From Oopsacas minuta (lineage: Eukaryota > Animalia > Porifera), in contig JAKMXF010000322.1 of the NCBI GenBank assembly GCA_024704765.1, positions 1 through 64,000 of the forward strand: a DNA stretch of 64,000 bases, in the 5' to 3' direction. How positions within the stretch are numbered: position 1 is the first letter of the stretch; the number at the start of each line of letters is the position of its first letter. The position numbers and the translations under genes were made by a program. Shown one piece after another: positions 15,531 through 41,381 of the stretch. The notes below the pieces were generated by a model. The model ran no database searches. It was not told the DNA's origin and worked only from the letters and a program-made list of their open reading frames with translations.

Positions 15531-15611
15531 GACTATTAGATTGTGTCTAGAATAATAACTGATCAAAACAATAATACAAACATTCTCAGTCAATATATGC
15601 AACTGATAAAA

Positions 15612-17584
15612 TTATTGGTCTGACCAGAGGAAGCACCGTTTAGATCGCTCTGCTGTAAGGAAGTACCTGCCCGATGGATGCCACAGAGCAGCTGTCACCT
15701 CCTTCGTATGTTCACGGATTGAAGTTTCTAGTTTCGCCTTCGCAACGTTCCAAATAAAAACAGATCCGTCGACAGAACCTGCGGCTACGAATCGGCCGTC
15801 TGGAGAGAAGCAGGCCCGCGAATATTCCATACCAATTCTGAATCCGTCAGCCGTTAGGGTACCCACTACTTGATGCATTTTGAGGTCGATGAGACGGAGG
15901 GCATCGTCCTTGGAGCAGGAGAGCAGCTGAGACCCGTCCGGACTGAGAGAGAGAGAAGTTACTTTACCTTGTAGCAGCATTTCATTTGATCCCATATCTG
16001 ACCTGTAATGTATGTTAGTTAGCTATTTAGCTTTACCGAAAGAATAGTATTCCTACCTGGGGTCCCAGAAACGTATCTTCTTATCAGTATGTCCTGATAT
16101 AATACTATTCCCAGAGCTCTCCCCGGTAACCAAATCATTACAAGAGGATCCTACGAATATTGTCCGTATACAAGCCTTGCTCCTGAGGTCCCAGAGCTTC
16201 AGTGTTCTGTCGTGAGATCCAGAGATTACTTTATATTCCGGCATAAACCGGACCGCCATGGCCTTATTAGTGTGTCCTGTTAGTGACAGTTTAAGTCTGA
16301 GATCTGTAGTCGACCAGTAACGACAAGCAAAATCAGCACTAGAGGCTATTAAATGCTTTTCTTGAGAATCAAAGTCAATACATAGAATCCCAGCATTAGC
16401 TCCTCTTAACGTAGATCTATAAATAGCCATTAAACCTTAGAAATATTATTTATTATTTATTAATTACCTAACTTGAGCTCTTCCCTCTGCTACATCCCAT
16501 AACTTCACATATTTATCGTCTCCTCCCGTTGCCATGAGGTGACCAGTAGGAGAGAACTGTATAGCGGTAACACAACCGTCATGAGCGTCCCATTTATAAG
16601 AGGGCTTGCTGGGTACAAACGCACTCATGCAGAGAGGCATTTCTAGGTCCCGGGAGTTTACAGGAGTAGCAGATTTCTGGGAAATAGAGAAAGCTCTTAT
16701 TTTAATATTTTCTAGAAGGTTCTGGGGTCTGAATTCATTACTACCGTTACTCTTAGGTAGTGCTTGAGATCTATCTAGTGTACTTTTCAATAGCTCGTTC
16801 TCCTGGGCTAGAGATCTCATCTTGTTCTCTGTCTCATTCATAGTATTTATCCTATTAATATATCCAATAATTCTCCTGTAATAAAATAATCAGTGAATAT
16901 CTTACCTGTCTGCGTCACGTGACTTAACATCCATCCATCTAGTGATCAGCTCTTGATTATCCTTCTGTAATTGTCTGAGCTTATCCTCCAGAGAGCAGCA
17001 GGTCATCTGTAATGCTTGATACTCATCATTCATAGTTTGATTAATTCTTGACACCTCTTCTCTCTCTATCTCTCTCAAACGGAGTTTGTCCTGTAGATCC
17101 TGACTGGTAGATCTGAGACGGTTCAGTTGTTGATCCTTACTTTCCTGCTCCATTTTAAGTCTGTCAATTTCTTCCCGTGACTGTACCAGTTTATTTAAGC
17201 TCTCTTTCTCCTTAGATATCGCTTGATTAAGCTCCTCCTTTACTCCCATTAGTCTCTGATGTAAATTAGCCTACAAAGATAGTTCCAGTTTATAACCCCT
17301 ATAATATCTATAGTTTCAGTACTCACCTCTTTCCTAGAGTCTCCCTTCCCCTTAGCAGGGCTCTCAGCTGTAACATTCCTTAGATTCAGCTGTAGATCAC
17401 TAATGTCTAACTCTAGCTCTCTCTGTTTACGTCTAAGAGTGTCGTTAGATTCTATTAGCTTAGCGTGAGAGGTAATTAGCTCCTTATATGGGTGTGATTC
17501 CCGGATCGTCCGGTCCCTCAGTGATGTTAGGAGTCTCTGTATCTCCCCACTGGTAGGTCTCAGATTTAGACACTCAGTAGCCAT
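15612..17584 (-). CDS. ATG16L1: Autophagy protein ATG16-like (coiled coil plus WD40), multi-exon
   Basis: N-terminal helix (LRDRTIRESHPYKELI), coiled coil (LITRWMDVKSRDADR) and WD40 repeats (ISGSHDRTLKLWDLRSKAC, RACFSPDGRFVAAGSVDG). Confidence 0.93.
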
Positions 17585-17672
17585 GTGTATCTAGCATCTG
17601 AGCAAGGTGTGATATAAGAAATATATAAATTTATTCGATAATTTAATTATTAATATGTGTAAAATATAATAT

Positions 17673-18782
17673 CTAAGAATCAGGAGGTGACATTATTCTG
17701 CGATTTACAATAAGTTCGTGTACGCTAGTAATTATCTCTGACATAGACATCCCAGAGAATGACTGCCCTGTAGCGGCCTTCTTAGCGTCTATAATGTATC
17801 CGTAGAGCTCAGAGTCCGTTAACTCGGAATGCCAATTGGATAACTTCCTTATGAGCCGATTGTGTACATCCTCAGATCTAGAGGGGAACATCTGGGGGCC
17901 GTATCTGGGCTGGGCATATCCTGTATGTACTGGATCAGAGAAATTAGCACAAGGGAGATATACTTCTACGTCTGTGGGGAGATAGGGGATTGGTTCAGGG
18001 ACAGGGATAGGGATAGGGATAGGGATAGGACGTGTAGGAAGCTCTGAGTTAATTCTGGATAGTCCTGACAGAGGAAGACCCCTGTCTAACTGATCGAATT
18101 GGCTCTGATATTGCTCTGTAACTCTCTTAAGCAATTCTCTTACAGATTCAGTATGTGTTCTGAGCTGTAAGGTGTGCTGTGTATTCTTGGAGTTCATTTC
18201 TGTCCAATTAGATAGTCTGTCTAGCTCTATAAGCTCAGTAGTAATGCAATCTAAAGTTTTATTCCTATTAATCAGCAGTATCTTCTTCTCAGCAGATACA
18301 GCTCTCTCTGTAGCGGCTATTACTCGTCTCTCCGCTTCTTCACAAATCTTTATCTTCTCATCAAGCACACTCAGAGCTCTATCTTTCTATACATATCTAT
18401 GTTACATAACTGTTGCTATGATGGTAATGATATATTAACCTACACTTGTATCAGCTGTATGCTTCAGCTCTCTGAGGTTCTCGTTTTCAACCCTGAGGGT
18501 CTCTAGTTCCCTCATCGTCTGCTCCAGCTGGTCACTCTTTTGACTCAGCTCCCTCTTAACACTATCCACCTGCGCATCAAATGGCGTAACACTAGGAGAG
18601 GTGTTGTTAGGCGGATTGAAGGGAGGGGATTGTGGGTATAAATTAGATTGATTCTTAGGGAAGAAAGGGATAGCATTAAGAGACAGTTTGTGCGGTACTT
18701 CACTCGGTAAATCCTTAAATGTAACTCTCTTAGGTTGGTAATCCTGCTTGAGAGTTGATAGAGCATCTGCTAGTGATACCAT
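17673..18782 (-). CDS. Coiled-coil protein with a C-terminal helical domain resembling the DZIP3/TTC3/RNF214 pre-RING domain (2 exons, intron 18387-18443)
   Basis: Coiled-coil N-half, Pro-rich linker (PIPIPIPIP) and C-terminal LIRKLSNWHSELTDSELYGYIIDAKKAATGQSFSGMSMSEIITSVHELI. Family call is by recalled resemblance only. Confidence 0.6.
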
Positions 18783-18844
18783 GCTAATAGAGAATAACAT
18801 ACAACTAATATATGACCTCACTATTCTATCAATACAATACAGAG

Positions 18845-19756
18845 TTAATTGGTAATATCTTGTCCTGTGGTTAGTATAGACAGAGCTCTTTGCAGGAATG
18901 TTACAGCTGTTTTCACATCCTCGTATTGGATGGCGGACCTTGCATAACTGACATGTTCATCTAACCGTATCATAAGGTCTGATTGTATAGGTACACCAGA
19001 AGTAGACATCACTCTCCCCTCTGCAGATTCTATTACAGGCTGAGCCGGGGCAGGAACAGCTGCTGAATTAGAGGAAAAATTACATGGTTACCAATATGGT
19101 GTTTAGGAATGATAACTCACAAGAAATAGTCTGAGGGGCTACAGGAAGTGGGACAGTGTCCTCCTCAGGATTACCAGGTACAGGAGTCTCTCCAGTCTTC
19201 AAACAGCGAGACAGATAAACAGCTTTTACTTTAGAATATTTCTTCAGCTCCTCAGCTTTCATTGGTAAATCCCCGAATTGTCCGAGAACCTCAAATAGAG
19301 AGGAAGCCGTGTAGAAAGCTCTAATCACTGGTTTACCAAAGTTACACGACCTAGCAAATAACAGTAATTACATAGCAAAACATAACGTAGTAAAGTATGT
19401 ACCTATCTTGGCCATCTGCCCATGAGAATACTTTGATAGCAGCTGCCTCACAGTAGGCTTCTGCCACGATATCGTCAGATATCGCGTCAGTTTCTTCAAA
19501 CTTGCTAATTATAGCCTTTTTCCGAGCTTCAAGTTCTTCCATTTTCTGCAAAAGATAAGTCTTCCCTTCTTTCGTTTTACTAGCCGGCGTCTTTATCCCT
19601 CTCTGTATAGCATGCCTGACAAAATATGATTAATACACATATTATATATAAGCTTTGAAACACCTACATAGTGATCCAATAAGATAAAATAGGATCTCTT
19701 TCCTTGAATTCATCAGCTAGTTTTAAGTATGGGGTGAGTACTTTGAATTCAGTCAT
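18845..19756 (-). CDS. VTA1: Vps4 cofactor Vta1 (multi-exon)
   Basis: MTEFKVLTPYLKLADEFKERDPILSYW (MIT domain), RAFYTASSLFEVLGQFGDL, KYSKVKAVYLSRCLKTGETPVPG and C-terminal YARSAIQYEDVKTAVTFLQRAL. Confidence 0.92.
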
Positions 19757-19807
19757 GCTAATGTGTTAATACAAACAATAATAATATAATTTTAATATAG
19801 AAGTACA

Positions 19808-20095
19808 CTATTTATTGTGTCCTAATCCTATCTGCGATCCAATCCTATCTGTATAAGCGCGGGATATTAAGTTCCAAGAATCTGTGTATCTATCCATACA
19901 CAGCTCTAGACATCTCATCTCATATCTATCAAGAGAGGAGGACGGTTTAGTAATACATTTAGTGAAACATTTCTCAACCATCTTCTCGTATAACATTTGA
20001 AAGTTTTGTATAATCATTTGATCTCTCAGAGACTCCATTACTTTAGCTCGCTCAGCTGATCCCATGTTGTTAAGCGCACTAAGGTCGTCTGACAT
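19808..20095 (-). CDS. TIMM13: Mitochondrial small Tim chaperone Tim13 (single exon)
   Basis: Twin CX3C (CFTKC ... CLELC) and MDRYTDSWNLISRAY, which match Tim13 better than Tim8. Confidence 0.9.
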   Translation of the reverse strand: MSDDLSALNNMGSAERAKVMESLRDQMIIQNFQMLYEKMVEKCFTKCITKPSSSLDRYEMRCLELCMDRYTDSWNLISRAYTDRIGSQIGLGHNK

Positions 20096-20236
20096 TCCTA
20101 TTTGCTATTAGCGAAACTAAGTAAGCACTAGTTTAATAGTTGTTGGATAAACTCAAATAATTATATAGAACATAATTCCACACTTCTATAAAATCACTAG
20201 GTATATTACAGTCAAATAATAATACACACAAACATC

Positions 20237-23200
20237 TTAAGCAAGGTATATAAATGTGTTGATATTTTCCTCATCTCTTTGCATGTATTTGTGTTCTATC
20301 AGCCATTCTATTTGTTCCTTTATCATCTTCTTCTGAGGTAGGAACATGTTCTTTAGAATCTCTACCAGTTCTGTCTGGAGAGACGCGTTATTAACTGTCT
20401 TACGCATTTTTAATATCTTTACTATAGCTTCCTATACATACAATAGTAATAATACAATCAGCTGATTATATGTAATAAACAGATGATTACCTGTACTCTG
20501 AGTATACGTAACTGTACTATCCCCTCCTCTTCCTCCTTCTTAGCTTTCTCTGTTGTTAATATTAGTCTTCCTACCAAGGATAGCTTAGCGCGTTTCTGGA
20601 GCTTTCCCTGACGACTAGACGAGAGGTATGGAATGCTAAGAATATGCCATAAATATAATAAATAACTTACAATATTCCGAATTCCTGATTTATGAAGAAG
20701 TTAGTACTATTATCAAAATCTTTAGCATTCTTAACAGCTGGTGACATCTTTAACACCTGTAATTTCAGTTTAGCTGAGGCTACCAATGAGAATAGAGTTC
20801 TTCTCAGCTCTGTATCAGGCAGCTGTGTAGCTAATCTATAGTATAGTTATATAACATAGGTGTTAATAACTGGAACTAAGGGTAACTCACTTTAAACTCT
20901 CAAAAGATATCTGATCCTCTGGTCTCTGATTGAATGCGAATAGAATACTCATTTGAAATGTTGTTACCTCTAGCTCAAATGTACCAACAGCATTCTGGAA
21001 TGTAACCTACATACACTAATTAATCAGCTGATTACACAGATGTATTAACTTACCGTCCCGTTAGATAACAGGTGATGCCACTGTAGCTTCCTGCCTGAAT
21101 GAGATTTCTTATAAAACTCCTCTACAGATGGGATGTACTCGTCTAGCTCTGTCGGGAGAGCTACCGGAACATAATCCGACCCCCGCGACCAGGCAGCAGC
21201 ATTCAGTATCTTAATATTAACCGAATCTAGCAAATAGATAAATAAATTATTGCTACTCCCAAGCGTGTTCTTATCTACTGTACTTACCAGCTGTTGTAGG
21301 TTCCTGATCGTGTAGATTCTCCTTAAATCGCTGATTAAGATCTTCTGATACTTTTATATCTTGAAACATTCTAGCTAGCTTATTGACAAACTCTACCGGC
21401 ATTCCTATGTCCCTCAACCATTCTACCATGTTCTCTTCAAGCTCTGAGTCTACACTCATCTCAAGAATTAAGCGACGTGTCAAGTGAGACTTGTGGTATC
21501 TAAGGACAGGATTAATCAGCTGTTTAGGTGTTAAATAAAGATAACTCACTTCATGAACACATCTTTATTCTGTACATATTTCAGTACCAGCAGCTATATA
21601 CACATTACATAGAGTAGACACGTAGATAATACATTAAACATATTTATTACCAAATTCTTGAGTTTCTCTTCTATCTCCTGGGGTGTCATCTTCTTAGACA
21701 GAGGACTCTTCCTCAACAACTGATCACAGAATAGAGCTAGGAGTTCAGGACACTTGGACTCAGGAGCTGTCTTGTTAGTGGTAGCACGGCTAGTCGGTAG
21801 TTCCAGTTTAAACACTGTAGTATCATTAACTACCTTCTTATATGCTTTGTCACGTGAAGTCAGGAATCTAGTGTCACTATTGAATGCCTGAGCAACCAAT
21901 TTAGAGAACCTGTTAAATAGTTTGAGTAGTTCCTCCACGTACTTCTCAGGGTCCTAAACAAGGAATAAGTAATAGCTATTTGATAGCATAACTATACTAC
22001 AATACCGTTGTTATGGTATCAGCACACTGCCTCATATCGTCTAGCCCTGCTTGATATATGTAATCCTCTAGATGATTAAGGATAGCTGAAACAGCTCCGG
22101 GAACTCTGTCAATTAGCATAAACATCATACGGAGATCTGTAAACAAATAAACAAATAAATAACAACAAATATTCACATGTGACAAGTATGTGTACTTACA
22201 TTCTATATTGTTATCTGTTATTAGCTTCAGACACTCAGCAAGTATTTGATCTCTAAAAGAATCTACAAGACATCTCACTAGACATTCCTTCAGCTACGGA
22301 TATATTATGACGTCATAACTTCATTAACAGTACAATCTGCAACTCACCAATTCTACAGATTTAATAGACTTTACAGTTTCTAAGTACTGCTTTCCTCTCA
22401 GCTCTTCTTCTGCTAGCTTAGCGTCAGCCTGTTAATAGGATATAATCATATTCTAACACCTTATATATCACATTATAACATACATATTTAAGATAGTTAA
22501 GTACACCGTTAGAAGCTAAATAAGCAGAAGCATGAGCTTTATAATAATTGTCAGTAGACTCTAGATACTTCCTCTCAAAATGTTCCTTATATATCCTCAG
22601 AGGATCAGTGTGATCAGTTGACAGGTTCACTAACGATAAGTAAATAAATATCTATAAATAGCTACAGAGGGGGTAAGCTACATACCGTAAGATTCTCTGA
22701 CCCCTATGACCAGCTGTTTATCAAATGACTCCCCTGATCTTTCCATCTCAACTAGTCTCATAGCAGCTCCGTGTATTTTATCTCGTATAGAATGGAATAT
22801 ATTATCATTCCATTCCTGTAGCATTAGTTTATAAATCAGGGATTGATCGATATCCTTCTTCATAGTAGCTACAGCCATCTTATTCCTCATGGCATCCTCT
22901 ACTACTCTGAATGGTAGAGGAAGGTAGTTACACTGCTGGAAGAATCTAGTCCATTCTCTTATGTATGCAGCTAGCAGGCTAGCTTCATCATTGTTAGACA
23001 ATACACTCTATAGTGAATATGTTATAAATCAAGGTTGAAACCGATCGAACCGAATACTGAACTATTCGGTTGCAACCTTGCTAGAAATGTGTATATGTAT
23101 ATTATGTTACTATTTCACACCTCTTGGATCTGGTTAATGTGTTGCTTAATTAGTTGCCGCAGCTCGTCATGGATCTTATGAGCTCCTTTCTCATCCCAGT

Positions 23201-23397
23201 TACAAACATTGCTTATATCTCTAAACAACAAACAAACAATAAACACCTATTTGTAAACAAACAAACAAACAAACAACTAACTGGAATAGGTCCCACCACT
23301 CCTGCTTCTTGATGTTCTCCTGTCTCAGAACCTTCCCTGCTACTAGAGCTATGTTCTCCCATTTAGACTCAAACTTAATTCCTTCCTGATGAAACAT
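20237..23397 (-). CDS. CUL5: Cullin-5 (multi-exon)
   Basis: FESKWENIALVAGKVLRQENIKKQEWWDLF, ESKCPELLALFCDQLLRKSPLSKK, LNAAAWSRGS and HSGRKLQWHHLLSNG; C-terminal ENINTFIYLA*. Confidence 0.96.
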
Positions 23398-23509
23398 TAA
23401 TCTACGTGACAGATGAATTAGCATAATAAACTAAGCACTAATTAGGATAATAATAATTGCTATATTTAACAACAGAGTTCTATCACTAATAAAATATCTA
23501 ATTAGAATT

Positions 23510-23863
23510 CTATTTCTTCTCTGGCTCCACCCCAGGAGCAGGTTCCTGGCGGATGATATCAGAATCCCCCGGGTCAATAATCGACAGCATAGATACCCTA
23601 AAGTACTTCCCACAGGCTGTCCCTAGGTCGTTATTAGTCCCTAGATAAGGATGTACCCCTGTCTTGGCTAGCATAGCGTAGTACTCAACCTCACTCTTAC
23701 GTAAAGGGGGTGTATTGTCACTGATGATTACTAGCTTGCTTTTACCGTTCCTCAGAGACCTTAAGGACTGTTTGTACCCCAAGACACACTTCCCGCTCTT
23801 CATCACTAGACGGAGTCTTGTGTTGATAGATTCCATAGCTTTCTTAGAGCTCTTAGCTGCCAT
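23510..23863 (-). CDS. RPL30: 60S ribosomal protein L30 (eL30), single exon
   Basis: [24 protein letters not shown] ... [46 protein letters not shown]. Confidence 0.98.
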
Positions 23864-23929
23864 TCCTAATGTATCTAATGGTAACTAAGGTATAATAAGC
23901 AAAATAATATACTAGCAAATAACTATGAA

Positions 23930-25144
23930 TTAGAATAAATCATAGAAATAATCTAATCCTTGTCCTAATTCCCACATTCCTATCCCTACAGATAATCTCT
24001 CTGCTAGACGAATCCTCGTCTGTATGGAGTTAAGACTTGGATATACTATTAGTCTAGGGTCTGTGGGGCTGTCTATCTGTATTATATGTTCTCCTGATTG
24101 CTCGTTCCATTCTATAGCAGGCTTAAGCTGTCTTAACTTATCAAGATACAGGTTACCGTCTAGAGGAACATGTCCCTGTCTAGAGAACTCGTTACCGAAT
24201 AGATTCACACCTATCAGGATCTTGTGTCTGAGCTCGTAATTAGGAGACAACTCATACACACACCCCTCTATCCAGGGGAGAGGGGAACTAGGTCCCGGTC
24301 TCTGTATAAGGGAGGGGTAGTCATACGTCATAATCAGGACAGAATCCAGTAGAGGATTAGTAGCAAGGAAGTGAGTAGAGTTATAAGGAGCAGGGTCTAT
24401 GGCCTCTGGATCTGGATTGGAGGGGGGTACTACCATACAGAGGTACAGATCCTTCTCCTCAAATCTATCCGACAGTATTTGTAAGAAGCCCATGAATTTA
24501 TAGAAATACTCAGATGGCATTTGTCTCCAGATCTCTAGCACAGCTCCGTGCATTTTGTAATGAGTGAGTAGATGAATGACGCCATCTACCATCTTATTCA
24601 TCCTATCTTCACTTCCATAAAAAGTGTCAAAATCATCAGCTGACCATCCGTCAAACAGGAACCTAGGAATAACCTTAAGGTCCGGATTAGACTTGTATAA
24701 TTTCCGTAACCATTTTTCTTTAATGTCATGTTTCCCTGATATATCTCCTGAAGGTGACAACTGGAACCAAACAGGAGATATATGTGTGAATTTATGACTG
24801 AAGGTTAGAGCTAGTTCGTAGCCTTTAGAATTCCAAGGAGTGACAAATACCAATGTCGTTTCCATGGATACGAATCGTATTTTAGCGTGCACATGAGAAT
24901 ATGTTTTATGATTACGTAACACGTCAGTATACTTGACATCCTCTCTAACCAAATTCCTATCTATCACAGTTGCATCCAGGGTAACAGGTGTATCAGCTGA
25001 TTTATCACATAGAGGGTCCCCGGGGGTACAGCTGTCCTTAGGGACAGGTTTCTTGCGGTCAGAGCGAGATAGAGTTTGATTGGTTAATGTAAGAAGAGAG
25101 GATAATAATAATAGCACAGCTAGGTAGCACCATAGAGACGCCAT
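23930..25144 (-). CDS. CHID1: Chitinase domain-containing protein 1 (GH18-like, inactive), single exon
   Basis: Signal peptide, FVTPWNSKGY, KFTHISPVWFQL, MTYDY, PGPSSPLPWIEGCV, KILIGVNLFG and GIGMWELGQGLDYFYDLF. Confidence 0.95.
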   Translation of the reverse strand: MASLWCYLAVLLLLSSLLTLTNQTLSRSDRKKPVPKDSCTPGDPLCDKSADTPVTLDATVIDRNLVREDVKYTDVLRNHKTYSHVHAKIRFVSMETTLVFVTPWNSKGYELALTFSHKFTHISPVWFQLSPSGDISGKHDIKEKWLRKLYKSNPDLKVIPRFLFDGWSADDFDTFYGSEDRMNKMVDGVIHLLTHYKMHGAVLEIWRQMPSEYFYKFMGFLQILSDRFEEKDLYLCMVVPPSNPDPEAIDPAPYNSTHFLATNPLLDSVLIMTYDYPSLIQRPGPSSPLPWIEGCVYELSPNYELRHKILIGVNLFGNEFSRQGHVPLDGNLYLDKLRQLKPAIEWNEQSGEHIIQIDSPTDPRLIVYPSLNSIQTRIRLAERLSVGIGMWELGQGLDYFYDLF

Positions 25145-25193
25145 GATATAAAAGGAATGCTAGAAATTTAATAGTTAAATATTCAAATAATAA

Positions 25194-26322
25194 TCAGAAA
25201 AACAACCGTTGAGCCTTCCTAAGCCTGGAGTTAGCCACCCTCCCAGGACCGAGCAGTAGAAAGGGGGATCTCTCTCCTGTGACGATACGATAAGCTTCTC
25301 TCAGGTGAGAGGGCAGGAGAGGGGGGTGGACAGGGTGAAAAGGGAGGGACGGCTGGATACGGGGCCGTTTGTGTCGTGGGGGTCTGAGGGCTGTGAGAGG
25401 AGAGGTGGATACAAGGGGAGGGAAGGAGTCCTGCTCAGATCCTGATACAGAGCTACGTTTCATAGGTCGTGACGTCATACCAGTAGAACCTATAACAAAC
25501 ATAATACATTAGTTAATAAGATTAAGTAACAGCTGACCTGATGAATCATGTTTAATGAGGTCACTCTGTGGGAAAGGAGATGACACCGGATCGAATATTC
25601 TAGAAAGAGATTGCTCTCTATCTCTACAGGATAGAGCTGTCTCTACTAATCTCCTGACAGCTTCATAGCAAAGATACCCGAGTACTTCTAGGAGTCTAGA
25701 GCTCCCTCTCTCCTCTATCAGAGGGAGGGATAGCCAGTCCCTGAGCTTCTGGGGTCTCCGGGTAAAGTTAACACTTCTACACTCTGTGAATTCTAAGTAT
25801 TCCTGTGTATTCATACACCTAGTTAGAATCTCATATCTCTGATATCTATACAGCAGTATATAAATCTAATTAGCTGATTAACAGCTGAGTAGCTAACCTA
25901 TCAGTGTTAATAGAGTCAAGACTCTCTTTATCCAGAAGGGAAGAGAAGTCTAGATTGGTGTCAGGTCCTATGGGGTCCATGAATGAGACAGTTAGAGAGT
26001 GTTTAGAGGTCCCACACCCTAACAGAGGATCCTCCATAGACTCCTCTGATACGGACTTATGAACTTGTTTAGCTAGCTTCTTGTAAGACACGTTACGGAG
26101 GACATGCTTCAGTCTATACCTGTCACCTCTCATAAGGAATAGTATGTACTCCAGAACCCTGTCTTCTGATTGGTTGAGGGACATACCGTGTGTGCATATA
26201 TGTGTTATGTCAGCACGAACCATGGATTCTATGAGACCGGCGGACTGCTTAGTAGCTCGTCTGCTATCCCCGCATGCATGCATGATAGCCTGTATCTCAG
26301 TTATAAATGACAAGGACTCCAT
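25194..26322 (-). CDS. SUPT3H: SAGA subunit Spt3 (3 exons)
   Basis: SFITEIQAIMHACGDSRR, MNTQEYLEFTECRSVNF, LEVLGYLCYEAV and LLPSHLREAYR histone-fold motifs. Start placed at the Met at 26322. Confidence 0.9.
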
Positions 26323-26418
26323 AGCTAACAAATACCAATGCATCATAACAGTAACTAACGTATATTTACACAGAAATAATCTATAATTGACACATTCAAT
26401 CTAACATGAATAATTCAG

Positions 26419-27542: not shown

Positions 27543-27930
27543 TTATAGCTAGCTAACGAGCAAATACATTAATATAGTAACCGTTTTACCGCTAGGTATG
27601 TGCTCTAAGTATAGTGTACGCTGGTTATAAGAACACCCTTAGGAGATAGGAGTAGCAACACATGTTCTTATAACTGGTATAAATATACAGGAATATATGA
27701 GAACCGTTATCCAGTGGATGGTGCTTATAATCGGCATCCACAGTACTAATGATTATGTTATACACCCAATATCCATCCCTCTAACCGATTCTATAGCTAT
27801 ATATGATAGCTGTAAGTAAAGGCAAATCCTAACATAGCCAGTGAAGGATTCATTACTTCGAGACTGCTAACAAATTTAGTTCTGCGGTGACGCACAACTA
27901 TAGTATCATAGCTAATAGAAATTAAAGGAT

Positions 27931-28807
27931 TTAGTCCTCAGGCATCAGATCCTTTGACCCAAACAGAGTGTCATACCCCGCCACCTCTATGATACACCAA
28001 TCCCTCTCAGTAGCCAGGAGGTGTTGGTCCAGGTCCTCTAGGGCGTCTAGCTCCTCCTTTGAGTACTTCTTCACCGGATATGAGGTGCTGACGGTTACTG
28101 TACTAGCGTGTACTGTCAATTCATTAGCGCTATCAGATATTACCTCTAGATCACTAGCCTGGATACGCGGTAATTTCCCTGACTCGAATAGGAGCAAACA
28201 TTCTGTGTGTACCTCAGAGATAGCGTTCTCAGAGATCGCTAGTTTCAAGACCCGTCCTCCTTTCCCTTTCAGGAGATAAGCCCCCTTCTCATTGTCCCCG
28301 TCTAGAGGGGCTTCTGGGGATTGGTGGATTAGTTCTACCTCTGTCCCCTCGATTATTGGCAGCTCCTCTTCTGAATCATCTCCCGTGCCCTCCCCCCCTG
28401 TAGAGTCATCATCATCACCCTAGTTACACAAATATATAAAAGGAATGTTACATATCATATCAATAAATACTTACATCTACCTGGTCTCCTGAGTGACTGT
28501 CATCAAATTCTTCCCCATCGACATTACTCTGTATCTTACCGCTACCATCCAAATCATCGGAATCTCCTTCTGACGCGTCCTCTAGGTCCACTTCGTCCAC
28601 GTCGTCCACTTCTGTCAATATACTATCGCCACTACTCACGAACCCCTCAACGTCTCGGGGCTCAGTGGAGTCAGGCTGTACTTCTTCTGACGGAGGGTCC
28701 AGTTTCTGTTTCTTCAGTCCTGCGTTTGTATCAGCTGGGTCTGAGGATACCTCATCTTGTGAGACACGTCTCTTTGTTTTAGTAGTCGGTTGCTGGGCAG
28801 ATGCCAT
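27931..28807 (-). CDS. Hypothetical protein: basic NLS-like N-terminus, long acidic tract, globular C-terminus (2 exons, intron 28420-28474)
   Basis: Canonical GTAAGT/TAG intron joins the two ORFs in frame; KTKRR and KKQK motifs; D/E-rich region. Family not recognised. Confidence 0.7.
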
Positions 28808-28910
28808 TGGTATGTACGAATATTAAATAATGCTAAAATATCTAATCGGTAATAATAAATAGCTTATGAAGTACTATATGGGTTGATTATAATTACATAC
28901 ACTTATAGCA

Positions 28911-31337
28911 TTATAAATGTACAGGTCTCTTCTTGCTACTCCACAAGGTGTCATGTATAGTAACTGCGTCTATTGAGGAGGAAATCCTCCTAGCGGGGAT
29001 TTCCTGGAACTCCTTAGACCCTGAATTGTACTTGTAAAGTTTAACCAACATCTCTGGGGTAACCTCACGGGGGCCGCAGCCCCCTATGCGTCTAGCACAC
29101 CCTGTCTCAGTGACGTAAGCGTATAGACCCCTGAATTTGCACCCTATAATATCCCTGAAGAGTATCAGGAAGTGATCGGATTGGCTCTCAGACAGATTAG
29201 ATAATATCTCCAATTTCTTAGCTATATTTGGGCCTCCTGCGAGGCATACGTCACTGATTGCATTCTTTACTATTTGCTTGTTTGATTTGTGTTTAGATAA
29301 GGCTGTCTCTGGTATAACCTTTGATTTTGTTACCTTACGGTCATGGTTACCAGCTTGTTGTATTGGTATGTTGTTGCCTTGTAGAGATTGCAAGGAATTT
29401 GAGCTACAAGATGGCGTAACGAATTTGACTCCATCAACTTGTGTTTTAAGGCCAGATTGCTTAGCACTATTCGTATGTCGAGCTGAATTCCTAGTTTCTA
29501 ACATTCTTAACATATTTTTTGCCTTCTCCGTTGCGAAGGGAGATTCTAACCTATTGACGTCATCCCCTGTGGTATAGAACGTAGGCGGCTTTTGGGCGAT
29601 TAGTTGAGTAGGGATGTGGTCAGATATCTTTACAATTCTTGGGTGTATAACTTGTTCTATAATTTCAGTAGAATTATCCTGTAATGTGTTAGGGATATGT
29701 ATACTAGCTTTTAATTGGTTAAATGCTGTATCATCTAATTTATCTATTGAGCTAATTCCCAGCTGATTACAGATATAATCTTCATAAGAGATATTCTGAT
29801 TGGTTGATACGTAAGAGAATGCCAACTGTCCCAGCTGTTGCCTGATGGCTTCATTATTAGGGGTACTAACGATAGCTTTTGATTGGTCAGTTTTCAGCCT
29901 CATGACCTCAGTTCTCAGTAATAAAGAGGCGGGGTTTTCTGGATATTTATTTCTTCTAGGAAATAAGTTCAAATGAATGACGCCATTCGTAATAATCTCT
30001 TGGTTAGCAACGCTTTCATTACTAGGAATGCTGCTATCAGAACTGTTAGAAATAGGAGACTGCTTGAGAGGAGACCAGGCCTCTTTAGTTCCAGTTCCAG
30101 TTCCAGTTCCAGTAGACACGTCACTCGTATCTGAAAATACATCACAATCACTAGTACCTGCTATAACAGCTGGAGGAGATAATACACCGCTAGGAATTAG
30201 GTCTTGAGTCCGTCTCAGGATATCAGTATTCTGACGAGATATACGGGACAGCTCAGGGTCGCTAGAGGACTTCACGGTACTTATAGCGGTACGGAGTCTA
30301 GACAGAGGTCTGCTTACTATTCTAGACATATTACTTCTTGGATACAGAGTAGGAGGATTGGAATGCTGAGAAACTAACAGGTTCTCAAATGAAGGTGTCA
30401 ATAAATTATCAGATGGTATCTTAGCAACAGAATCCATACTATGGAATCTACCAGCTGTCAGGAGATTAGGTGCATGAGGTGACCGACCAATGAGAGCTCC
30501 GTATAGAGTAGGTACATATACACTACATGAACTAGTCACCTCAAAACATAAGAACATAGAAGATAGTGATACCATAACATAGGGTAACATGATGGGATCA
30601 GAACAACGGACAATTCCCTGAGAACTCAAACAGAACTTCAATTGTGGAATCTGCATACACGCATTGGTTACCAGAGTACCATTATGGAATGCATCCTCTA
30701 GTTCTAGAATATCATTAGAATTAGCTGGGAACTTCCCATTAGATATCTGTACACACTGTGGTATATAATAATGTAATATTAACAGTAGGATAGTACCGTT
30801 ATAGAGGGATGAGGATATTGAGGTGACTATTGGTACAAGGGTAGCCAGATGTACCCTGTTCCTCAGTTTATCACAGACAGACTGTACCCATAACAACAGA
30901 CCGTCCTCTAGGCTATCCACACCCTGCATTACTCCAGTTATCTTATGTATCTTATTAACAATACATTCTATAGAAACCTGTGTGGTAGCGGATAGCAGCA
31001 TAATCCTCTCTATAAGGAATAGATGTTCATCTAGAGCAATGGGATCATTCCTAGATAACAATACCGTATCCATGGTACAACCTAATCTGTTTATAGCTAC
31101 TTCAAATGACGTCACCTGCTTAACAGATACAGATTGTATATGAGCTATAAGACAGAAGTACGGGTCACCTTTGGTGAGCCACCAGACCAATTCAGGCCTT
31201 ATTTTGAATGTGTATAAGTCTGTGTATGGATAAGATAGGACTTCTCTAGGGAAGGGAAATATTAAGTCATCATAGTAGGACTGTATCCAACTTATGGCAC
31301 AACGGAAACGTAGATTACGTAATGAGAATGCCATCAT
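28911..31337 (-). CDS. CAMSAP: CAMSAP/Patronin microtubule minus-end protein, single exon
   Basis: CH-like region (LLLWVQSVC, LLLILHYYIPQ) and C-terminal CKK domain (SNKQIVKNAISDVCLAG, FLILFRD, KFRGLY, YKYNSGSKEFQEIP). Confidence 0.93.
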   Translation of the reverse strand: MMAFSLRNLRFRCAISWIQSYYDDLIFPFPREVLSYPYTDLYTFKIRPELVWWLTKGDPYFCLIAHIQSVSVKQVTSFEVAINRLGCTMDTVLLSRNDPIALDEHLFLIERIMLLSATTQVSIECIVNKIHKITGVMQGVDSLEDGLLLWVQSVCDKLRNRVHLATLVPIVTSISSSLYNGTILLLILHYYIPQCVQISNGKFPANSNDILELEDAFHNGTLVTNACMQIPQLKFCLSSQGIVRCSDPIMLPYVMVSLSSMFLCFEVTSSCSVYVPTLYGALIGRSPHAPNLLTAGRFHSMDSVAKIPSDNLLTPSFENLLVSQHSNPPTLYPRSNMSRIVSRPLSRLRTAISTVKSSSDPELSRISRQNTDILRRTQDLIPSGVLSPPAVIAGTSDCDVFSDTSDVSTGTGTGTGTKEAWSPLKQSPISNSSDSSIPSNESVANQEIITNGVIHLNLFPRRNKYPENPASLLLRTEVMRLKTDQSKAIVSTPNNEAIRQQLGQLAFSYVSTNQNISYEDYICNQLGISSIDKLDDTAFNQLKASIHIPNTLQDNSTEIIEQVIHPRIVKISDHIPTQLIAQKPPTFYTTGDDVNRLESPFATEKAKNMLRMLETRNSARHTNSAKQSGLKTQVDGVKFVTPSCSSNSLQSLQGNNIPIQQAGNHDRKVTKSKVIPETALSKHKSNKQIVKNAISDVCLAGGPNIAKKLEILSNLSESQSDHFLILFRDIIGCKFRGLYAYVTETGCARRIGGCGPREVTPEMLVKLYKYNSGSKEFQEIPARRISSSIDAVTIHDTLWSSKKRPVHL

Positions 31338-31738
31338 ACTCTAATGGTAACTAAGGAGATGTGCTGATTATATAAAAGTTTGAACAATTACCCAGAGTGC
31401 GTATGGAACTAATTATTAAATAGAACATAAGACATAGTTCCATATAATCTCGTATTACAATAGTGTACAATAATTATTTGTTGTAACACGAATAGTACAA
31501 TAATTGCCTCATTAGAGACACAATAAATAAGTAACACCTCCCCTTACAAAGAGGAAATAGGATCAATAATTACAGTTTAGGAGGACTCTACAGCTGGGGG
31601 GTGGGACAGGGGTCTGAGGACTCCTAGTGCTAACAATACGATATGCCATGAGAACAATAGAGAGGTTATTTTGCGTATTATTCGTGTCAAAAGGTTAATC
31701 ACATGCAAATTCAGTGTCAAATAGGTTTCTTACTGGAA

Positions 31739-33214
31739 TCAACTTGTACACAATTGTATAGCAAATAAACATATCTTAAAATACACATAGAAATTACCTA
31801 CAGCACAATATAATGACGTCATCATAAGAGGAATGAATTGATACGTAGCTAGATAACCTCCGAAGATATCCAGACAGATTAATGGTAAGAGCCCCGACAG
31901 GTAACATAATTCTAACAGGGACAGCTGATTAGCCTTAGCAACGCATTTAGGTAGAAATATGTGACAAAAACTAATATTCAGGAGGAAGAGACATATCTTA
32001 ATAGGAATCTCTCTCAGCTGAATAACCAATGGGAAGAGAGAGAACACGCCTACAGCTGAGAGAAGAGTATAAATAGGAGTGAGAGAGGGATGCTCTATGG
32101 CTATAAGTGTGAATGGAATTATAACCAATAGAATAGCTTTCTCATGGACATGCCAACCGAAGAGAAAAGAAGAAAACCCACATAGTGTTAATGACGTCAC
32201 AAATCTAACGAATGGATTATCTACTCTATTAACTCGCATTCCTATCAGCATACCTGGTAACATAGAAACTAATGTGCATACCAGCGTTGCTAGGGGCGTG
32301 ACAGAGGGCAGGAATGTATGTGTACCGTCACCAACTAGTCCCCTGGTTAATGAAGAGTTAGAATTAGATATGAATAATTTGGATAGAATTATATCAGCTG
32401 TGTTGTAGAGAGCCCATGCGTTTGGCGCCCAATATGCATGTGTTAAACCTCTCCTGAATGGGAACAGTCTAGACAACAGCTGAGAGAGTTGTGAAATAAA
32501 TGGCAGCAGAGATACGAAGGATATAGATAGTACGGTCAGTGATAAAGCTATGAATCTAAGGGTTGCTATAGTTACTAAGGAATGTCTAGTATGTGAGGTA
32601 TACAAGCAATAATGAGTCAATAAGTATATGAAATAAGCAAACGCGAAGTAAACAAATATATGTTTAAAGAACAACAAGATAGTAAACAGGGCAGCTGCCG
32701 TAATGAACCATTCTCTCTTCATAGCAACCAGAGAGAATATAAGAATGCCAAACAGCATTCCATTATATTGGAAGTGTATATGATCTACAATTAGCAGACC
32801 AGAATTACACACAATTAACAGGGCTAGAGCAATACTACGGTGCTTAACTCTATCAGTTAATGTACTGACGTAATAATCTGTAGCTATAATTAGAATAAGA
32901 TCACTAGCAACCACTGATATCCTCTGGAATGTAACACAATTATCATTAGCATATTCATGATTATCTAGCCGCGTTATGTTAGGGTCTACCATGGTAGCAG
33001 GTTTGGAGAGAAGGAATTCAAAATAAGCGAATAGAGGGGGGTAATCTAGTGTCCATATAGAGTCATTATTATAGTACCATTCCTCTAAGGGGAGTGATGA
33101 CGTGATGGCTAACCAATTCCTGTGTACCTCAAAATCTGTAGAGTGGTAGGCAGGCATCAATAGGAGCTTTATACACGTTATAACTACACCAGTAGTTATT
33201 ACTGTAGAATACAT
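31739..33214 (-). CDS. ALG8: Dolichyl-P-Glc:Glc1Man9GlcNAc2-PP-Dol alpha-1,3-glucosyltransferase, single exon
   Basis: YHSTDFEVHRNWLAIT, WTLDYPPLFAYFE, IVDHIHFQYNG, RLFPFRRGLTHAYWAPNAWALY and FGWHVHEKAIL. Confidence 0.97.
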   Translation of the reverse strand: MYSTVITTGVVITCIKLLLMPAYHSTDFEVHRNWLAITSSLPLEEWYYNNDSIWTLDYPPLFAYFEFLLSKPATMVDPNITRLDNHEYANDNCVTFQRISVVASDLILIIATDYYVSTLTDRVKHRSIALALLIVCNSGLLIVDHIHFQYNGMLFGILIFSLVAMKREWFITAAALFTILLFFKHIFVYFAFAYFIYLLTHYCLYTSHTRHSLVTIATLRFIALSLTVLSISFVSLLPFISQLSQLLSRLFPFRRGLTHAYWAPNAWALYNTADIILSKLFISNSNSSLTRGLVGDGTHTFLPSVTPLATLVCTLVSMLPGMLIGMRVNRVDNPFVRFVTSLTLCGFSSFLFGWHVHEKAILLVIIPFTLIAIEHPSLTPIYTLLSAVGVFSLFPLVIQLREIPIKICLFLLNISFCHIFLPKCVAKANQLSLLELCYLSGLLPLICLDIFGGYLATYQFIPLMMTSLYCAVGNFYVYFKICLFAIQLCTS

Positions 33215-33332
33215 GCTAATCAGTAGTAATGAGATAATTCATTGAAGTTATATATACAGATATAAGCTTAAAAAGCGAATAGAAGTGACAAATGTGAATA
33301 AAACTAGGAGAGGGATTGGAGGAATGGTTGGG

Positions 33333-35179
33333 CTATAATATCCTGAGGAAGCATCTCTCCCACTGAGACGGGAGAATAGAGTCAGATCTAGTTCCAGAAC
33401 AATCCTCAAATACTGCTTCCTTACATACTTCTGTAACCAAATTATCAGGTACATTCTTGTGACAATTCCTGAACTCTTGTCTAGTGATCTCTCCCCCGTC
33501 ATTCCTATCACACCTGTCAAAATACCATTTCAGGGTTCTCCTCTTGTTAAGATAAGGATCTCTGTTAGTTATACGGGAGTAGTTAGCACCCTTCTGAGAG
33601 AACAGTCTCCTCTTAGCCCTGGATACAAGGTTAGGGGGACATAGAAGACAATTAGAATCCTGTCGTGATGTCAGAACTCCGTTACTACAAGAACTAATGA
33701 ACAAATAAGATAATTGCTATAATCTAGTTAACATATAACTTACTGTATAGAGCATATGTGTGTGTAGGTATCACCGTTATGAATATTAACATCTCCAGTT
33801 TCCAGTCGTAGCGTACAGTTATTACCTAATTTAATAATTCATAAATACCTATTAGTTAACACGAGTTAACATAACTATCAACATAATTTGTTGTTAGGAT
33901 ATGCTATAGATAATATAACGCACCAAAATTTGTACAGTCAGGACGTCCAGACTGAAAGCTGCCATATTTGTATACTCCAGTATCTGGCTCTACACACCAG
34001 CAGAATTGGTAGTTAGGAATCTCTGAATAGCATTGAGTATTCTTAAAGTTTCCATTAACCTCACAGCTGGGGAACACGGCCCCTTTTATGTCTGAGTGTG
34101 ACAGGGTACCAGAATTGGCCTTATTGGTCCAATCAATGATCTCGTCATCTGTTGGGCGTGTGTAGGAAGAGACGAGGGGCCTGGTGGATAAGGAACAATC
34201 TGTAGCTATATGATACAGTAACATAAATCGGAGTAGTAAGAAATATTCTTATAATAATATTACTGTATTATGTTAATGCATACCTTGAGCACAAGCAGTG
34301 AGTATTAACTGCGCTGTAGAGTTACAAGATGCTGATTTAAGGGAGCATTCTGATTGATACTGAGTACCGAATTGGTCACACACATGACCCTCCTCTAGAC
34401 AGGGGTACACCTCACACCTATAAATTACAATATAAGTATAACCTATGCGTAAATGCTAGTTCACATCTAGCACGAGTATAGTTATACATAACCATTAACA
34501 GCTGATTACAACCACACAATAGGATACAATAGAATAATAGGATAATACATGAAAGTAGTAATATAACTCACGAAGGTAGAGGAGGGATAGAGGAGGAGGA
34601 GGTCTGACATTGAGGTACACCATTAACTGACACACAGGTTTGATAATCTGGACAATTAACGTATAGACAAACTCTTTGATGTGGTTCTAAACCTATAAAG
34701 TAATAATCTAATTAAATTTCAATAGAGAAATAATTAGCAGACATCACACACGTGTATAATTACTAGAGCTACAATTGTGGTGTGAATTCCTGACAAATCA
34801 TAAGCCCCTCAAAAATACATTTCTTACAAGAAATATAGTTATTGGGTAATTCTATATGCATTCCCGAGAAAGGCGTCGTTGCTAGGGACTGAAATGAAAT
34901 AAATGCCCAATTAACCTCTACTCTATAACTTAATTAGGAAATTATTAGCTATTAGAGAGATAAAAGGTGTGAAAATATGAATATAATGGATTAATAAGAA
35001 AGTAATAAAACTACAAACTCACCAAATTCATCTTGCTCTGCAGCCGGTATAGCACGTGATTCAATCTAAATAAAATATATATTACATACATTCCAGGATC
35101 GGTAAGCGTTGCTAGGATACACAGCCAATTCTAGGAATGCGGATAAATCCGCTGAAGATAACGAGATGGTGCTAGACAT
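33333..35179 (-). CDS. SPARC-family (SMOC/testican-like) protein: follistatin-N, Kazal, thyroglobulin-1, EF-hand pair; 5' end uncertain
   Basis: Exons give CLYVNCPDYQTCVSVNGVPQC (FOLN), VCDQFGTQYQSECSLKSASC (Kazal), FPSCEVNGNFKNTQC...FCWCVEPDTG (TY) and LKWYFDRCDRNDGGEITRQEF...WERCF (SPARC EC). The start at 35179 is one plausible splice path. Confidence 0.75.
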
Positions 35180-36921
35180 ATCAATTACAGAGGTGTTAAA
35201 ACTATATATACACATCCTGGACACAGAATATACCCTAACAACCAATACGTAGATTAGGAATTTATAACTCAATAAACTGGGAATAGATCAGAAACTTGAA
35301 ACTCAGTCACGAGTCCCAATTAACTGTGACAATAATGTATACACACTTATAGAGCACACCTGCTAGGAATACAGAGGGTAGAGATCATACAGGGGGGTAG
35401 GGTGTAGTGTGGTTAAGTAATTTAGAGGTATCCCTCCTATATGTTATTAATATGGGATGAATAGGTATAGGAAATGTATTATTATTAGCATATATACATT
35501 AATTCAATTTGGGTTAATTATACTGTAACAGGTATAGCCAGCAGGAGCAATAAATGAGTGAACAACAAATCGACAATATTAACAGAGGTTTAAATATGGA
35601 TAAGGCGTTAAACTGAGAAAAACTGAACTTATTTACAAAATGAAATTTGTTGTTATTTATAAACAGAAGTAAACAAATTATAATATTATAAACAAACTCA
35701 CCGAAATAAACCAAATAAGTAAAAGTATTAAATTCAAATATTTTGAAGAAAATACTTCCATTTTTGAGTCAGAATTAGAAGAAACGAAAAAAGTTAAAAT
35801 CCAAAAAGGAAGAAATAACACAAACAAAGAACCAGTCAGCGTGTGAAATAATTAATTCATGAAAATAAAACTTTTTAGGATATTTATACATTTGAATAGA
35901 CTCACACAAGAGGTCTTTTATAGAGATTAGTGACTAGTAACTCTATATGAACTGAGCAGCTGTTGATCAATCGATTTACATCAAAGATACATAACAAACA
36001 GGAAAATATTAATAGAGTATATTTGTAACTAATAAATACAGGCAAACTATAATCAGTCATAAATACACAGAATGGTTTCTAATAAACTTCAGAAATTGCG
36101 GTTATAGCAAGTCAGTGGCCTCGTAAACAAGTAAATAAACAAATAAACAAATATTCAGTAAAAAATACAAATAAATGCATATAAATACACAAAACTAACC
36201 GAAAACAAACAGCACTTCACTATCATATCAAATGCACACTTTATCTATAAACAAACAAATAGTGAATCATAAAATGAATAATTGTCGCTATTGCTGGATA
36301 AAATGGTTGTGGATATGTTAATCACTAGCAACAGCTTTACACAGTTGGAATGTTACAATTATATTTCATTTATCGATTGAATGGAAGGAGCGTCCCTGCT
36401 AGTACGAATTACTGTAATACTTGCGCAATACAGCTGTATAGTCTTTGATCTTTAACTGAAAGTCTGTGTATCTGTGTAATTAGTCTACATACGGACTATG
36501 GTTGTAAGCTCTATTAATGTATTATACATATCCAGCAGAGATCTGAACAATTAGATTCTTGCTGTGGTTAGATCGTAGTAGTATATCGGTGTCTAGTCGA
36601 GCCGGGGATTAATCATATGAATAGAATATTATGACACCTCTGACATTTTCTATATAGTGTAACCTCCACTAACGGAGTGACAGGAATGCCAAGAATGCGA
36701 CCCCGTTATGGAGGCTACACTGATTTCAATAAAATCCCCATAATCAATGAAATAGAATAATGTGTGGTATCCAATATTCAGTGAAATAAACAAGAATACA
36801 AATAACAATAACAATAACAACAAATATATGAGGATTATGTATGAAAAAGAAAGTTGTAAACAATATGAATATACCTAACACCTCAAACAATCAGCAACAA
36901 ATCTATCCACACAATTCATTG

Positions 36922-37604
36922 TTATTTTGTTTGTCTCACTTTTCCAGGAATGTAGTTCTTGTCAATAATTGGTTCCTGTAGGAACATGTGGAGACATCTC
37001 TCGTTTTGAGCCAATGGGTGACCAGCTATCCTAGAGGAATAGGAGCGATTATTCATATGAATATACAAACAAATAAACAAACAAATTACTTGTTTACAAA
37101 GTCTTCTAATGCAGTCCTCCTCGCTTCAATGAAAGCAGGCTCAAACAATCCTAAACACGAACAACAATAACAACAATAACAACAAAATATGCATATACAA
37201 CAAGCATACCATCATCTCCTCTGAATGGTAGCTGTCTAGCTAGAGCCTTGCCGGGTAGTGGAGGGACTAGTATTTTAGAATCTCTCTCTAATTCGCCCTT
37301 TAACCATTCAAAGTCTGAGTACCTCCGTCTAACAGAGCTCTCTTTCATTTTGAATATAGGTATGTTAGTTCTCATCAACACCTACCGATTAATCATATGA
37401 TGAATCACAAATTATCACCATAACATACAAGTAACTAACCTCGTAATCAGAGTACCTGTTCTTACCCAGACCGTGGGTTTCAGGGTGTATAATATCAATC
37501 TCAAGGAAATCAGACGGGGCAGCGTATGCATCGTCCAGGTTCTGTTTCTTGTCAGTGAATAATCGATCCGTTTTTGGACCGCCTGTAGCCCCACCAGAAC
37601 TCAT
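36922..37604 (-). CDS. SNX3: Sorting nexin 3/12 (4 exons)
   Basis: LDDAYAAPSDFLEIDI, SVRRRYSDFEWLKGELERDSKILVPPLPGKA and IAGHPLAQNERCLHMFLQE. Stop at 36922-36924. Confidence 0.95.
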
Positions 37605-37739
37605 ACTAATCTAATTACGTCATAATTATAGTGTTTGTATGGGAAATAAACATATAATAGGAATTATAGTCACGTGTCAGATATAGGCTATATAAACAAG
37701 TAAATAAAAGAGATAAGCTATACCACACACGATAAACAA

Positions 37740-40700: not shown

Positions 40701-41381
40701 TTTAGAATTATAAAATCTGTTCTCAACCTGGGATCCACGGGTGTAAAAGGTTGGGAATCGCTGGTGGCTTATAATAATGCATTTAGGAAATGTCAGAAGA
40801 CCTAAGAGAAGCGGTCTGCCTCTGTGACGGAGGATACACAGGAAAGTACTGTGACTCTATAATTGACTACTGTATCCCTGATCCGTGTGACGTAGGAGCT
40901 ATCTGTTACTCAGGGATTAATTCATACTACTGTAAGTGTGATAATAATGTATCAGGGTGTGTAGAGAGCGGAGATCCTGGATGGGTGAGTTATACTCCTG
41001 TTGTCAAGGAGAATCAATGTAATGTTATATATTACACTCGTGTAGCAATTGATAGAAGGGATAGACAACTCAGTGGCTGGCTTGGCGGGGGGGCTAGTCT
41101 TGGGGGTAACACTTACCCTCCTATCTGTCCTTATACTTGTGTTAATCATATTAATTGTGAGGTATAAGAGGAAACGCAGACAGCCAGTGGAGAGAGAGAA
41201 TACGGGAGATACGTTCATAAACCCCTTCTTTGACGGTACAGCTATCTACCCCCTTATTGACCCGCCTTCCTACGACACAGTCCAAGTACCGCACTACTTA
41301 ATTAAGCCAGCAGTACCAGCTGGCGAGGAGAAGAATGAAACATTCGAGAACTATACTTATAAGCCTAAAATCCCTCTTTGA
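37740..41381 (+). CDS. Delta-like Notch ligand A (signal peptide, MNNL/C2, DSL, long EGF array, TM, cytoplasmic tail)
   Basis: NGRLANGRCCD..C...C...FFVCIRE (MNNL), CWEAWYGEYCNVYC..DDSEGHYECDTNGDKLCLEGWTGVHC (DSL), many EGF repeats and TM LAGGLVLGVTLTLLSVLILVLIILIV. Confidence 0.92.

Follow-up and report, generated by a model that had tools for sequence, protein, structure and literature searches.

Whether neighbouring genes of a glass sponge can be expressed from shared transcripts is the question raised by the first 64 kb of contig JAKMXF010000322.1 of Oopsacas minuta (GCA_024704765.1), a stretch to which we refer as the window and whose coordinates are those of the record. Here, 14 consecutive genes from SNX3 to ATG16L1 lie on the minus strand with stop-to-start gaps as small as 49 nucleotides (nt), and a preliminary description of this DNA had read them as polycistronic transcription units. 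The signals in the spacers, a poly(A) hexamer followed by an unpaired splice acceptor, proved to be real, non-random and conserved. Since spliced leader (SL) trans-splicing, to which the description had referred for hexactinellid sponges, is indeed published for this class (PMC7986045, PMC10282587), these conserved processing signals make polycistronic units the best-fitting reading. On balance, we lean towards the view that at least parts of the run would be transcribed together and resolved by SL trans-splicing. Several units are more likely than one, and a single operon of all 14 genes is improbable because gaps of 388, 401 and more than 1,100 nt as well as conserved promoter-like motifs interrupt the run.

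The gene run and its gaps

Gene identities were assigned from open reading frames (ORFs), Pfam, sequence matches in PDB (TIM13, CHID1 and Cullin-5) and the public annotation of GCA_024704765.1, which bear out the 14 consecutive minus-strand genes first described. In the order of transcription, they are (aa, amino acids):

36922..37604, minus strand: SNX3, PX domain, first gene of the run (homology)
33333..35761, minus strand: SMOC/SPARC-like secreted protein with thyroglobulin-1 domain (ORF, annotation; homology-supported exons 33333-34410)
31739..33214, minus strand: ALG6/ALG8-family glucosyltransferase, 491 aa (Pfam PF03155)
28911..31337, minus strand: CAMSAP/patronin, 808 aa, single exon (Pfam CKK domain, E=8e-38)
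27931..28807, minus strand: acidic protein of unknown family, 273 aa (ORF, annotation)
26419..27542, minus strand: TFG-like protein with PB1 domain, 306 aa (weak Pfam PB1 match)
25194..26322, minus strand: SUPT3H, 342 aa, 2 introns (Pfam TFIID-18kDa)
23930..25144, minus strand: CHID1, 404 aa, single exon (PDB 3bxw, E=3e-75)
23510..23863, minus strand: RPL30 (eL30), 117 aa, single exon (Pfam; homologs named eL30)
20237..23397, minus strand: Cullin-5 (CUL5), 773 aa, about 10 introns (PDB match, annotation)
19808..20095, minus strand: TIMM13, 95 aa, single exon (Pfam Tim10/DDP; best PDB match TIM13)
18845..19756, minus strand: VTA1, 249 aa (Pfam Vta1 and Vta1_C)
17673..18782, minus strand: TTC3-like helical protein, 350 aa (Pfam PF24525/PF24905)
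15612..17584, minus strand: ATG16L1, 585 aa, 4 short introns, last gene of the run (Pfam ATG16 and WD40; intron model)

The gaps reported earlier, that is 88, 62, 51, 141, 112, 66, 49, 96, 388, 103, 401 and 118 nt, agree exactly with the ends of the public coding sequences. Thus, stop-to-start gaps measure 49-141 nt over nine consecutive genes, with gaps of 103 and 118 nt elsewhere in the run. The gaps of 111, 112 and 94 nt in the plus-strand run SLC35A3-TTBK-SEC31-GANP hold as well. The start codons can be trusted, as orthologs from other species align with these proteins from residues 1-4 onwards. The distance from SNX3 to the next gene had been put at about 1.7 kb, but with the public SNX3 model, which has 188 aa and extends to 35927, it would be 165 nt. 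The last exon of this model is probably wrong: the typical conserved SNX3 C-terminus and stop codon are found by homology at 36925-36922, and because SNX3 then ends at 36922, the gap measures at least 1.16 kb, which is nearer to the first estimate. The annotated start of the SMOC-like gene at 35761 has no acceptor nearby.

Processing signals in the spacers and their conservation

To compare the spacers, orthologous loci were retrieved by exact-protein look-up from metagenomes of Vazella pourtalesii (L002-L005) and from three more assemblies (L006/L014, L009/L010/L013 and L011); the comparison covers O. minuta and four other hexactinellid assemblies, representing three deep lineages. Read on the minus strand, the spacers present themselves as follows:

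33215..33332, minus strand: 118-nt spacer before the ALG6/8-family gene; ATTAG acceptor 1 nt from ATG
31338..31738, minus strand: 401-nt gap before CAMSAP; blocks conserved relative to L009, one of them containing CAGCTG
28808..28910, minus strand: 103-nt spacer before the acidic gene; nearest acceptor 25 nt from ATG (31-33 nt in other species)
27543..27930, minus strand: 388-nt gap before the TFG-like gene; conserved TAG/CT directly after the stop codon of the acidic gene
26323..26418, minus strand: 96-nt spacer before SUPT3H; GTTAG acceptor 2 nt from ATG (1-2 nt in 3 species)
25145..25193, minus strand: 49-nt spacer before CHID1; length 44-49 nt in 5 species
23864..23929, minus strand: 66-nt spacer before RPL30; length 61-69 nt in 5 species
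23398..23509, minus strand: 112-nt spacer before CUL5; TAG acceptor 4 nt from ATG (3-5 nt in 5/5 species)
20096..20236, minus strand: 141-nt spacer before TIMM13; ATTAAA, then several TAGs, the last 2 nt from ATG
19757..19807, minus strand: 51-nt spacer before VTA1; ATTAAA at 19796-19791, then ATTAG acceptor 1 nt from ATG
18783..18844, minus strand: 62-nt spacer before the TTC3-like gene; ATTAG acceptor 1 nt from ATG, equal distance in 3 species
17585..17672, minus strand: 88-nt spacer before ATG16L1; ATTAAA and AATAAA, then CAG/TAG acceptors 6-13 nt from ATG

As the preliminary description had it, ATTAAA followed by a TAG acceptor occurs in both the 49-nt and the 51-nt spacer. In the former, ATTAAA at 25172-25167 is followed by CTAG, whose AG lies at 25161-25160, and then by CATTCC. 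The acceptor is located 15 nt from the CHID1 start codon, 34 nt past the SUPT3H stop codon and 4 nt past the hexamer. As the 49-nt spacer contains no GT, this acceptor is not part of an intron in the 5' untranslated region (UTR) lying within the spacer, and SUPT3H transcripts must therefore cross it. This forced overlap also means that the CHID1 precursor must start inside SUPT3H. Moreover, the branch region for the CHID1 acceptor falls into the end of the upstream gene, so that SUPT3H transcripts carry a usable CHID1 acceptor. Where the hexamer precedes the acceptor by 2-4 nt, the upstream mRNA has to be cleaved at or beyond the acceptor.

Conservation of this arrangement stands out against strong divergence of the surrounding sequence. 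Between lineages, the CHID1 protein is 64-73% identical, and four-fold sites of its gene are only 35-45% identical, which indicates that neutral sites are near saturation. Nonetheless, the core A[AT]TAAA-N2-4-CTAG-CATTCC of the SUPT3H-CHID1 spacer is present in 5/5 species, with ATTAAA and AATAAA interchanging, and the distance from the CHID1 acceptor to the start codon is 15/15/15/15/14 nt. Spacer lengths are kept in the five species as well (49/48/44/47/49, 66/69/61/67/67 and 112/104/106/88/116 nt), and gene order and strand are retained across the lineages from ALG8 to ATG16L1. In the orthologs of the 51-nt spacer, an A[AT]TAAA hexamer is found in 3/4 species and the acceptor lies 1-2 nt from the start codon in all of them; in the 88-nt spacer, ATTAAA and a 'CAGATGCTA' block are kept in L006 and L011. 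Judged from these alignments, the acceptor and the hexamer are under selection.

Counts over all spacers point in the same direction. Nearly all start codons of the run follow a TAG or CAG (YAG), which is present within 10 nt upstream of 11 of the 14, and within 11 nt of 18 of the 25 start codons of the window (p=5.5e-7 relative to a rate of 0.24 in shuffled sequences). Among 39 orthologous spacers from five genomes, 30 carry YAG within 10 nt of the start codon (shuffles: mean 9.4, maximum 17) and 17 contain A[AT]TAAA (shuffles: mean 5.8, maximum 13). The hexamer is strongly conserved in some spacers and is missing from the 62-, 66-, 96- and 112-nt spacers of O. minuta. Introns of this genome, as modelled from annotated product lengths, measure ~50 nt, and the sites ahead of the start codons resemble the genome's acceptors in that 19 of the 22 modelled introns end in TAG. 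The housekeeping genes carry an acceptor of this kind, whereas the sortilin gene and two Delta-like genes have none near their start codons, which would correspond to the pattern of other operon-bearing animals (PMC12460157).

Some spacers have additional conserved elements. In the 66-nt spacer, the last 30 nt are conserved and comprise YCCTAG-YTACC at -24, a second TAG at -14/-15 and AGGA abutting the start codon. An identical 17-nt sequence, CCTTAGTTACCATTAGA, precedes the start codons of RPL30 (23870-23890) and CAMSAP (31340-31356) on the minus strand, and in other species the starts of RPL30, CAMSAP and SUPT3H are preceded, at 14-27 nt, by the recurrent motif TAG-YWACC. The 388-nt gap contains (27830-27930, core ~27861) a nearly invariant block of ~33 nt that spans a 5' splice donor, GAA/GTAATG (…TCGAA/GTAATGAATCCTTCAC), in 5/5 species, despite the saturation of neutral sites. 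Together with the TAG/CT following the acidic gene, this block may delimit a non-coding first exon of TFG or represent a regulatory 5' splice site, and the gap may effectively be tighter than its length. The block was also considered as an SL RNA gene, which was rejected: a conserved Sm-like site is lacking and conservation stops 16 nt past the donor. Rfam reports no non-coding RNA in the window, the 388-nt gap included.

The compared loci also differ in several lineage-specific respects. The TTC3-like gene is lost in the L009/L010 species. In CUL5, an intron harbours an antisense cytochrome P450 gene in L006 (13391-15269) and L011 (13726-15276), which is absent from O. minuta; there, the CUL5 intron at 23026-23082 holds a short high-copy repeat with a DNA word depth of ~3,380 as compared to ~276 nearby, and many contigs branch at this repeat in all four DNA runs, that of the related organism included. 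Tandem duplications comprise the 3' part of CUL5, TIMM13 and VTA1 in L009/L010 (~13.5-19 kb) and the end of the acidic gene plus the start of TFG in L006 (4.2-6.3 kb), and Vazella and L009 have an extra paralog of the acidic gene before TFG. The Vazella contigs are metagenomic DNA, and two of them end inside a TTTG microsatellite.

Shared transcripts or separate promoters

From the spacer anatomy and the published trans-splicing of the class we infer co-transcription within the run, which could proceed as follows. RNA polymerase II would start at a few promoters and read through several genes. Initiation might take place in the divergent region between SNX3 and the adjacent Delta-like gene, in the interval that precedes the SMOC-like gene, in the 401-nt gap, which has conserved blocks and is a candidate for an internal promoter, and perhaps at sites within genes. 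The upstream mRNA would be cleaved and polyadenylated at the hexamer in the tiny spacer, and a capped leader would be trans-spliced onto the downstream mRNA at the TAG just before the start codon. Polyadenylation and trans-splicing would thereby be coupled, and read-through transcripts resolved in this manner would constitute an operon. For the chaetognath Paraspadella gotoi, a group of genes counts as an operon if its members are separated by <250 bp and one or more of them bear the SL (PMC12460157); by this distance rule, SMOC and ALG8 would probably form one unit, CAMSAP and the acidic gene a second, and the nine genes from TFG to ATG16L1 a third, with SNX3 standing apart.

Several observations weigh against this reading. 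All sequencing runs compared with the window are genomic DNA, as indicated by flat depth, retained introns and the absence of joints (one run derives from a relative of ~96% identity). Protein look-ups retrieved no transcript contigs; RPL30 and TIMM13 of O. minuta were found only on the genome contig. Likewise, a search for RPL30 homologs yielded no further hexactinellid clusters, and cluster look-ups of the Vazella neighbours returned no transcript names. In Aphrocallistes vastus, whose leader measures ~37 nt, only 4% of long cDNA reads carry it (PMC10282587). The retained gene order is not specific to the run, because flanking genes on the opposite strand are also syntenic in other glass sponges, and we therefore rejected synteny as proof of an operon constraint. 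Nor is tight spacing confined to neighbours on the same strand. The convergent stop codons of ATG16L1 and GANP are only 81 nt apart (15531-15611; GANP stop at 15530), and the start codons of SNX3 and a Delta-like gene diverge within 135 nt:

37605..37739, no strand: divergent region between the SNX3 and Delta-like start codons, 135 nt; E-box CACGTGA and CRE-like TGACGTAA (CRE, cAMP response element), both conserved in L013

These neighbours tell us that very small promoters and terminators exist at this locus, and the 135-nt region, which heads the run and has a conserved E-box and CRE-like site, may serve as a bidirectional promoter. Neither strand of the 81-nt interval carries a canonical poly(A) hexamer, and the 3' ends of GANP and ATG16L1 probably overlap; the equivalent junction in L014 measures 637 nt. 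Downstream of the 135-nt region, two tandem Delta/DSL-EGF genes occupy 37740-43214 on the plus strand, 106 nt apart from each other.

The alternative that survives best is that the genes are densely packed and monocistronic, each with a small promoter in the body or 3' end of its upstream neighbour, SL trans-splicing merely trimming the outron, and the shared orientation either preventing collisions in transcription or being inherited with the gene order. It can draw on the full CRE palindrome TGACGTCA, the commonest 8-mer palindrome in the window, which occurs 21 times as compared to 0.5 times expected (~40-fold). Sites such as those at 7524, 10251, 15449, 22308, 25470, 27352, 31814 and 49616 have unique flanks and lie in exons as well as introns. 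Positions inside SUPT3H, ALG8, CAMSAP, TFG and CUL5 are conserved across species, among them 22308 in a CUL5 intron, 25470 in the last exon of SUPT3H, a site 82 nt before the stop codon of the ALG6/8-family gene that is kept in 3 species, and intron position +7 of TFG, conserved in other glass sponges. In 2 species the palindrome overlaps the CHID1 start codon, and the head of the run bears the same kind of motif. The tiny spacers leave no room for a promoter of the downstream gene, but these conserved sites within upstream genes could be internal promoters, and the conserved 30 nt before RPL30, like the block shared with CAMSAP, could represent a core promoter of the gene itself rather than acceptor context. 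Two further sequences are frequent, that is TCAGCTGA with 17 occurrences and TAGTTACC with 15 as compared to 3.3 expected; the latter count is no evidence by itself, since TAGTTACC coincides in part with GGTAAC splice donors read in reverse complement. Internal promoters are also contained in operons of C. elegans. With internal promoters, the arrangement may be one of 'hybrid' operons or may be fully monocistronic.

However, the palindrome serves this alternative incompletely. There are seven full TGACGTCA sites for 14 genes, at no consistent distance from start codons, and none in the 6.7 kb that hold RPL30, TIMM13, VTA1, the TTC3-like gene and ATG16L1, whereas GANP alone has five. Termination within 49 nt would need extreme efficiency, and wherever a hexamer abuts an acceptor, upstream transcripts would still cross the acceptor of the downstream gene. 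We consider purely monocistronic expression unlikely, although it is an alternative to be taken seriously.

A second alternative would do without leader and operons altogether: the TAG or ATTAG ahead of the start codons may be a compact initiator or a translation-context motif of genes with very short, genome-encoded 5' UTRs. In agreement with this idea, the motif is mostly ATTAG at these sites, whereas ATAG is more frequent at intron ends, and CATTCC following CTAG resembles an initiator core. An acceptor weight matrix built from the 22 introns, too weak to decide the matter, separates the sites from background only weakly (p=0.013). Yet sites ahead of start codons and intron 3' ends are both overwhelmingly TAG, a hexamer 8-10 nt before CATTCC does not stand at the distance expected of a TATA box from an initiator, and glass sponges are published to trans-splice a leader (PMC7986045, PMC10282587), so that we regard this explanation as highly improbable.

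Least credible of all is a chance run of orientations in a compact genome with no function behind it, which would fit the right-hand third of the window, where strands are mixed and alternate and gaps range from 236 to 4,503 nt, but not the spacer signals, which exceed shuffled expectation by far and are conserved across saturated divergence. The chance of 1 in 8000 originally quoted for 14 genes in a row ignores selection across the genome and is overstated, as ~65% of simulated genomes with 16,413 randomly oriented genes hold a run of at least 14. Within the window, 7 strand switches among 27 genes correspond to p=0.014.

Relation to known operons and significance

The polycistronic units proposed here resemble operons of C. 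elegans, including the 'SL1-type' with directly adjoining poly(A) and trans-splice sites, in their co-oriented housekeeping genes with a ribosomal protein gene among them, in intercistronic distances of ~50-140 nt and in a poly(A) hexamer of the upstream gene with an unpaired acceptor behind it, near the start codon of the next gene. They differ in that several spacers fall below the typical ~100 nt and that hexamer and acceptor are only 2-4 nt apart; moreover, this DNA gives no sign of an SL2-like leader reserved for downstream genes. Nematode operons usually comprise eight genes at most, which nine to fourteen genes would exceed. With the operons of Oikopleura dioica and Ciona, the locus shares the compact genome with introns of ~50 nt, very short intercistronic regions, housekeeping content and a single leader type, the latter being assumed for O. 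minuta from the literature on its class; however, the sponge belongs to a different, non-bilaterian phylum. Similar to the TFG-to-ATG16L1 stretch, the longest operon of P. gotoi has nine genes, and its operons include ribosomal, ubiquitin and proteasome genes (PMC12460157). The distance rule of this species fits, but there SL reads were mapped to the genes, whereas here the leader is taken from the literature on the class. Directional gene clusters of kinetoplastids likewise form same-strand arrays diverging from a strand-switch region, comparable to the 135-nt SNX3/Delta interval, and upstream polyadenylation appears physically coupled to downstream trans-splicing. The clusters of O. minuta are far shorter, however, with mixed-strand neighbours and larger gaps, the Delta-like and sortilin genes go without an acceptor, and ordinary transcription-factor motifs are present. 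The window thus does not present the kinetoplastid arrangement, in which practically every gene belongs to a very long cluster on one strand and trans-splicing applies to all of them.

Operons were stated as not reported for hexactinellids in a methods paper of 2021 (PMC7986045). The genome paper on O. minuta mentions neither trans-splicing nor operons, that on A. vastus does not discuss operons, and we found no report of a sponge operon in the literature published up to 2026. It is a realistic, if still tentative, possibility that glass sponges have true SL-resolved operons of up to ~9 genes, in which poly(A) signal and acceptor are almost fused and which have remained intact since the deep splits of Hexactinellida. 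These would be the first operons of a non-bilaterian animal and would represent a further independent, or else ancient, origin. If so, operonic gene expression would extend to Porifera, which bears on repeated versus early origin of trans-splicing and operons in animals and would help to explain how an animal genome of 61 Mb is packed. The annotation of 5' ends, promoters and expression units in sponges would change accordingly, and the conserved, nearly fused module of poly(A) signal and acceptor would provide a compact test case for the coupling of 3'-end formation and trans-splicing.

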